Assembly (NCBI RefSeq): GCF_006345805.1
Contig: NC_042999.1
Span: 74,524,001 to 74,588,000, forward strand
Origin: Octopus sinensis
Taxonomy: Eukaryota
DNA: 64,000 nt
Direction: 5' to 3'
Each line of letters opens with the position of its first letter. Positions within the stretch are counted from its first letter, which is position 1. The notes below the pieces were generated by a model, which was given only the letters and a program-made list of their open reading frames with translations, searched no databases and was not told the DNA's origin. The translations under genes were made by a program, and so were the position numbers. Shown one piece after another: positions 32,229 to 32,514 of this stretch.

Positions 32229-32305
32229 ACTGTTATCCTTGCCCAGGACCGAACATCAACCCAATTGCATTAGGGGCACGCTGGTTAGCATATGCAGATA
32301 AAAGA
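32229..32305 (+). CDS. BCAS3: BCAS3 exon (phase 1 to 0): [25 protein letters not shown]
   Basis: Acceptor ttcttttttacag; near-identical to human [25 protein letters not shown]; the phase-0 donor must be the atypical gttaagtat at 32306. Confidence 0.93.
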
Positions 32306-32514
32306 GTTAAGTATAATTAAATTACGATATCATTGTTTTGTTCTTTCAGATTTTTTTCATGTCTAATTGTTTGGCAAGAAGTTTTTTTTTTAATCTCATG
32401 GTTCCAGATTCAGCCCCATTGCATAGCACCTTGAGTAAGGGTCTTCTACTATAGGCCCTTGCACCAACTCCAAAGCCATGTGAGTGGATTTGGTAGGTGG
32501 AAACTGAAAGAAGC

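Follow-up and report, generated by a model that had tools for sequence, protein, structure and literature searches.

The window (the whole 64-kb stretch of DNA that was analyzed) encodes eleven exons of a BCAS3 gene on the plus strand between positions 21180 and 62610. The exon set comes from a comparison of plus-strand open segments of orthologous loci with the window, after which the boundaries were read. The eleven exons join as a single, stop-free open frame of 1509 coding nucleotides (503 amino acids). The exons, along with the intron and the splice sites that follow the fourth of them (exon D), are as follows:

21180-21243, plus strand: BCAS3 exon
26970-27080, plus strand: BCAS3 exon
29912-29988, plus strand: BCAS3 exon
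32229-32305, plus strand: BCAS3 exon D (77 nt, phase 0 end), from its translation, open frame and orthologue identity
32303-32314, plus strand: 5' splice site AGA/GUUAAGUAU, predicted cleavage between 32305 and 32306
32306-37431, plus strand: GT-AG intron of 5126 nt, phase 0, from its donor, its acceptor and the orthologue positions
32311-32312, plus strand: neighboring GT, probably unused as a donor (adds 5 nt, shifts the frame)
37405-37431, plus strand: pyrimidine-rich tract and AG acceptor (..aagttcaatatttcttttcatgcag/), the sole AG that fits the reading frame
37432-37515, plus strand: BCAS3 exon after D (84 nt), encoding LVSVHQSCGGMSGDGSQSYAATVINAAK and followed by the normal donor AAG/gtatgtat
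43462-43632, plus strand: BCAS3 exon
47397-47627, plus strand: BCAS3 exon
51281-51374, plus strand: BCAS3 exon
54181-54324, plus strand: BCAS3 exon
57644-57940, plus strand: BCAS3 exon
62448-62610, plus strand: BCAS3 exon

The 503-aa product matches the profile PF21034 (BCAS3_WD40) with E=2.7e-127 and 425.6 bits (Pfam cut-off 26.3), over profile positions 81-478 of 479, and its top named protein matches are BCAS3 proteins, which confirms the gene assignment made in the first-pass annotation. The closest named proteins are all from molluscs (Solemya, 63% identity; Pinctada, 62%; Plakobranchus and Batillaria, 61% each; Lottia, 60%; range 57-63%), so that the proposed molluscan origin is well supported. 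Lower-ranking matches are to proteins of a nemertean and annelids (50-53% identity) and of vertebrates (about 45%). The product is colinear with residues 64-566 of Solemya velum BCAS3. An exon matching the first 63 residues of that protein was not identified in positions 1-21000 of the window; the gene either starts beyond the window or is too diverged at its 5' end for detection. The Solemya velum gene spans 108.7 kb.

Exon D is colinear with about residues 148-174 of Solemya velum BCAS3 and is 80-88% identical to the counterpart exon in the orthologous loci L001-L011. At its end, the sequence of positions 32303-32314 is AGA/GTTAAGTAT, in which the G at 32306 begins the donor; it resembles the consensus donor with one extra base at either +2/+3 or +4/+5. 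Within 45 nt on either side, no in-frame GT exists besides that at 32306, and the in-frame GC dinucleotides in the same range fall inside conserved codons. Joining 32305 to 37432 gives ...WLAYADKR/LVSVHQSCGG..., colinear with annotated animal BCAS3 proteins, and among the candidate joins this one alone leaves the frame open across the 11 exons. The claim that the reading frame forces the donor to 32306 is thus upheld at the level of sequence. No extra residue occurs at the junction in the annotated BCAS3 proteins of molluscs, annelids, a nemertean, spiders, an insect, an echinoderm and vertebrates, which share the pattern ..WLA[YF]A[DE]xx/L.., with ..YAENK/LIRCHQ.. in vertebrates, and therefore leave no room for a micro-exon.

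The neighboring GT at 32311 pairs with U1 in the normal register through 5 Watson-Crick pairs and 1 wobble. Its use as a donor would break the frame, as had been noted, and lead to a premature stop 36 codons on. The frame is likewise shifted when the 77-nt exon is skipped, and either skipping or mis-splicing of exon D would place the frame shift inside the WD40 domain. It is extremely unlikely that exon D is spliced in another way, whether it uses a different donor, is joined to a micro-exon within the 5.1-kb intron or is followed by an intron of the U12 type, given that no other in-frame GT lies near, that the GT at 32311 leads to a stop, and that neither the orthologous loci nor the annotated proteins have extra junction residues. 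The U12-type donor consensus is /RTATCCTT, and a U12-type intron was rejected because the donor /GTTAAGTAT lacks this box. The intron has the ends expected of the U2 type, with GT at 32306-32307, AG at 37430-37431, and a pyrimidine tract upstream of the AG (the acceptor before 37432 reads ..ttttcatgcag/). A 53-aa peptide spanning the junction, compared with a protein collection, returned no spliced product and only nine single-exon fragments from other taxa. Use of the 32305/37432 junction in vivo is strongly implied by the reading frame, orthology and the conserved intron position.

The sequence GTTAAGTAT is found once in the window, exactly at the end of exon D. About 1 copy per 128 kb is expected by chance when both strands are counted, and the probability of TAAGTAT at +3 to +9 given a GT, computed from the intron base composition, is 1.5e-4. 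RNA structure that sequesters the donor was ruled out: the minimum free energy of the donor region is -8.7 kcal/mol vs -13.4 kcal/mol for shuffled sequences (z = +1.69).

Each of the gene's remaining 10 donors is a GT site that pairs in the normal register and belongs to the GTAAGT, GTGAGT, GTATGT or GTAAC type:

Donors 1-5: AAA/gtaagtat, TCG/gtgagtat, CAA/gtaagtaa, AAG/gtatgtat, CAT/gtaagttt
Donors 6-10: AGG/gtaagtat, GAG/gtaactca, CGG/gtaagttg, GAG/gtaagctg, GAG/gtaacagt

From these ten ordinary donors we infer that the U1 of this organism has the standard 5' end AUACUUACCUG. A scan of the window against Rfam for U1 and other RNAs identified no family at threshold. Two of the ten, at 51375-51383 (GAG/gtaactca) and 62611-62619 (GAG/gtaacagt), lack the usual G at +5 and are weaker, still with normal-register pairing.

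Pairing of the exon D donor was tested against the standard U1 5' end, with energies from ViennaRNA:

Normal register: 3 Watson-Crick pairs (+1, +2, +4) and a G-U pair at -2; +0.9 to +2.1 kcal/mol
Shifted-by-one register: 9 Watson-Crick pairs (-1A:U10, +1G:C9, and +3 to +9 with A7 to A1), +2U facing C8; -6.6 kcal/mol
Bulge register (either U flipped out): 8 pairs; -4.4 kcal/mol
Downstream 7-bp helix alone: 7 pairs; -5.2 kcal/mol
Comparison donor AGA/GUAAGUAU: -9.4 kcal/mol
Comparison donor AGA/GUUAGUAU: -5.5 kcal/mol
Comparison, consensus donor: -15.2 kcal/mol

The pairing counts reported earlier for the normal register (3 Watson-Crick pairs and one wobble) and for the register shifted by one (9 Watson-Crick pairs) are exact, and the energies bear out the far better match to U1 in the latter. 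The shifted register is also the unconstrained pairing optimum under this energy model, which omits pseudouridines and the U1-C and U1-70K proteins. In the U1 snRNP crystal structure, U1-C contacts the U1 duplex at the place where the +2U/C8 mismatch would lie.

The calculated energies can be compared with published values. The RNAstructure prediction for a consensus oligonucleotide (Table 2 of PMC4856993) is -15.2 kcal/mol, the same as the ViennaRNA value obtained here, and for a shifted-register oligonucleotide the same study gives a prediction of -6.5 and a measurement of -6.8 kcal/mol (PMC4856993). The -6.6 kcal/mol predicted for the exon D donor is close to these shifted-register values, and thus falls within a range in which a site is known to work.

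An alternative is that the displaced consensus is irrelevant, and that the same exon end is selected by weak U1 binding in the normal register or by other factors, such as exon definition, proteins bound to a downstream U-rich stretch, or a variant U1. The acceptor upstream of exon D is strong (ttttccttcttttttacag/), a U-rich stretch does occur at about 32335-32358 (30-55 nt downstream of the donor), and U1-independent or distant-U1 cases are mentioned in the literature (PMC4856993). However, the normal register provides only three pairs with a positive predicted free energy, and the adjoining perfect 7-nt match would bind U1 anyway. We consider this alternative very unlikely.

Recognition of human U2-type donors in a register shifted by +1 goes back to Roca and Krainer 2009 (described in PMC4856993 and PMC11162779), and donors recognized in bulge registers to Roca et al. 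2012 and Tan et al. 2016 (PMC4856993). Earlier work on shifted and bulge registers is also described in PMC9311317. About 1.5% of human donors are predicted to be in validated non-canonical registers (PMC4856993, PMC11162779). A literature text search for GUUAAGU/GTTAAGT returned no relevant paper. The exon D donor has all of the sequence-level features of the shifted-register class, being part of a U2-type GT-AG intron and combining poor pairing in the normal register with much better pairing in the shifted one. It thus fits the class to which the first-pass annotation had assigned it (Roca and Krainer 2009; PMC4856993, PMC11162779).

That annotation had overlooked a second way to pair the same site. 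With U at both +2 and +3, pairing of the downstream consensus is restored when one U is left out, as is characteristic of bulge +2/+3 donors: +1G would pair with C8, one U with A7, and +4 to +9 with U1 positions 6 to 1, at the same site and with the same cleavage. Bulging at +3 (or +2) has been validated experimentally, and 68 human '+2/+3' sites are predicted (PMC4856993). The 8 pairs of this register give -4.4 kcal/mol vs at least +0.9 kcal/mol for the normal register, and they leave +1G:C8 and +2U:A7 where they normally lie in the U1 snRNP. On the other hand, the model gives the shifted register an advantage of 2.2 kcal/mol over the bulge register, and the exon ends in AGA, which provides no pair at -1 in the bulge register and -1A:U10 in the shifted one. 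We regard recognition through a bulged U as possible, with a modest chance of being correct. The two registers cannot be separated from sequence alone. The shifted-register reading proposed earlier has the most support, with the bulge register as an alternative to it.

The exon pair was recovered at 11 loci, from DNA around exon fragments in other assemblies and from two annotated genes. At all 11 the intron is at the identical position and phase (..AD[KR][KR]/L..). Among them are Lottia gigantea and Owenia fusiformis, an annelid, so the intron is old, its position being common at least to molluscs and this annelid. The donors at these loci are:

L001: AGA/gtaagtgt
L002: AGG/gtgagtgg
L003: AGA/gttagtat
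L004: AGA/gtgagtat
L005-L007: AGG/gtgagg
L009: AGG/gtaagg
L011: CGA/gtaagt
Lottia gigantea: AGA/gtaagtgt
Owenia fusiformis: AAG/gtgagatc

These are ordinary donors at every one of the 11 loci (GTAAGT, GTGAGT, GTTAGT, GTGAGG, GTAAGG or GTGAGA), and for the nine that were computed the best U1 pairing is in the normal register. L011 (SRR322879) is probably an oyster; runs SRR322874-77 are from Crassostrea gigas (PMC3998141).

The suggestion that the atypical donor might be ancestral fails on this comparison, since normal-register donors at all 11 orthologous loci point to GTTAAGTAT as lineage-specific. Most simply, it would have arisen via a one-base insertion in the window's own lineage. The window sequence GTTAAGTAT equals the GTTAGTAT of L003 plus one A, or GTAAGTAT plus one T; over nine donor bases L003 differs from the window only in lacking one A, and AGA/gtaagtgt (L001 and Lottia) is likewise close to the window donor minus one base. 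A close relative of the window species was sought among these loci and none was identified, every locus being 71-79% identical over four exons. At this distance the insertion is undatable.

The extra base could also be a sequencing or assembly indel that turned T into TT or A into AA, or else an allele that is rare and happens to be carried by the sequenced individual, the real donor of the population then being AGA/GTAAGTAT or AGA/GTTAGTAT. The window and the orthologous donors differ by one base in the length of a two-base run, which is how long reads typically err, and the base is intronic, where no reading frame would expose an error. Against this, the 1509 nt of coding sequence in the window are free of frameshifts, including at an A7 run, which makes an assembly error unlikely. 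The fraction of true donors of this kind in humans is estimated to exceed the per-base indel error rate of modern assemblies, although for sites of the GTTAAGT type the predicted human share is well below 0.1%. Among 201,541 human sites, 68 are predicted to be of the '+2/+3' bulge type, with the shifted class in addition (PMC4856993). We judge an artifactual or allelic extra base improbable.

Some of the loci differ in other ways. A scan of metagenome DNA with a degenerate WLAYADKR+GT pattern yielded one chance match (L012) and one homologue that is intronless at this position (L013). The latter (contig JAAUYM010062324.1, 2534-2730, minus strand) is a G+C-rich BCAS3 homologue with no intron at either the C/D or the D/E junction, and in its organism both introns were either lost or never present. 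In Owenia fusiformis (L015, 3619-3771), the D/E intron is present and the C/D intron is absent, with the two exons fused (..FKQRFWVTSCFPCPG..). L003 (9132-9139) and L004 (9213-9220) are both from ENA sample ERZ25069866 and have near-identical exons, with donors gttagtat vs gtgagtat and introns of 941 vs 875 nt. The pair may represent haplotypes, paralogues or separate species.

The intron at 32306-37431 is much longer than its orthologues (5126 nt vs 320-2991 nt), and diverged LINE-like fragments fill it together with a tandem array and AT microsatellites. The LINE-like repeats help to account for its 5.1 kb, vs 0.3-3 kb in the orthologues. Diverged fragments of LINE-like retrotransposons on the minus strand flank exon D at 31500-32189 and about 32400-34350, leaving only about 90 nt of non-repeat intron on each side. 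They encode the reverse-transcriptase motifs NNYRGIKLL, QFGFVPGRS, FVDLEKAFD and YADDLA, along with endonuclease-like ORFs (33421-34066), and two copies beside exon D are 80% identical over 138 bp. The two introns that flank exon D each carry one arm of an inverted repeat (30045-30484 vs 35076-35529; about 450 bp at 70% identity), the upstream arm belonging to a tandem array of 62-129-bp units at 30228-30608. Inverted repeats of this kind can bring flanking introns together, and such a function is conceivable here. AT/TA microsatellites are located within the intron at 35928-35980 (26 copies) and 37141-37191 (25 copies), the second about 240 nt upstream of the acceptor.

We predict that this is an ordinary U2-type GT-AG intron of BCAS3 whose donor has gained one base and is bound by U1 in a register shifted by one, an explanation that we consider probable. 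A consensus-like donor (GTAAGTAT or GTTAGTAT) would have gained one base in this lineage to give AGA/GUUAAGUAU, with cleavage kept at the original exon end, 32305/32306, so that the protein is unchanged. Initial recognition by the U1 snRNP would occur in the shifted register, with -1A:U10, +1G:C9, a single +2U/C8 mismatch, and UAAGUAU at +3 to +9 paired with U1 A7 to A1. Cleavage at the sole usable GU would then be set by U5 and U6 rather than by U1. The shifted register is favored over the bulge register because the last base of the exon is A and not G, and -1A pairs with U10 only when U1 is shifted; the preference amounts to 2.2 kcal/mol in the model. A G at -1 would instead favor the bulge register through pairing with C9. 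The GU that usually pairs with U6 at +5/+6 sits at +6/+7 here. The intact downstream UAAGUAU could, however, be a mere relic of a recent insertion rather than a sign of shifted-register function.

Like the human shifted-register donors, the exon D site is part of a GT-AG intron, is a very poor match to U1 in the normal register and an almost complete one once U1 moves a nucleotide downstream, where +1G faces C9, and would be cleaved at the upstream GU. Unlike them, it is predicted from sequence, is in the mollusc-like genome of a non-model lophotrochozoan, and reflects a one-base change in one lineage that is not conserved. The resemblance to bulge +2/+3 donors lies in GUU at +1 to +3 followed by AAGU(AU), where removing one U restores a consensus-like helix, but the exon ends in AGA, not xAG, and the exonic pairs that support a bulge are absent. 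There is also a parallel with the tandem donor of STAT3 exon 21, which involves a non-canonical U6 register (PMC11162779), in that the position of U1 is uncoupled from cleavage and the GU that pairs with U6 is displaced by one nucleotide. STAT3 exon 21 has two competing donors 3 nt apart and a GU displaced upstream (to +4/+5), whereas the window has one usable donor and its GU at +6/+7. With the BCAS3 orthologues of molluscs and annelids the window gene shares the PF21034 match and an intron after ..YADK[RK] at the same position and phase; it differs from them in the 5.1-kb length of this intron (0.3-3 kb in the orthologues) and in the atypical donor. As non-canonical U1 registers are established in human cells, the window donor is a further predicted case of a known rare donor type and implies no new mechanism.

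The donor is of a type that standard splice-site scoring and gene finders would rate as very weak, and the end of this exon may be misannotated as a result. As a single predicted case, it would extend donors of the shifted type outside the vertebrates. The comparison provides a before-and-after picture, with a conserved intron position, normal donors elsewhere and one extra base in the window, and lends support to the idea that donors can survive small indels through non-canonical U1 registers. It is possible, although we hold this only tentatively, that sliding of U1 by one nucleotide made the single-base insertion tolerable in the donor of a constitutive, frame-critical exon, with U6 perhaps displaced as well. 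If so, the site and its normal orthologues would form a matched pair for the study of U1 and U6 register choice, and register flexibility would buffer splice donors against indels across animals.
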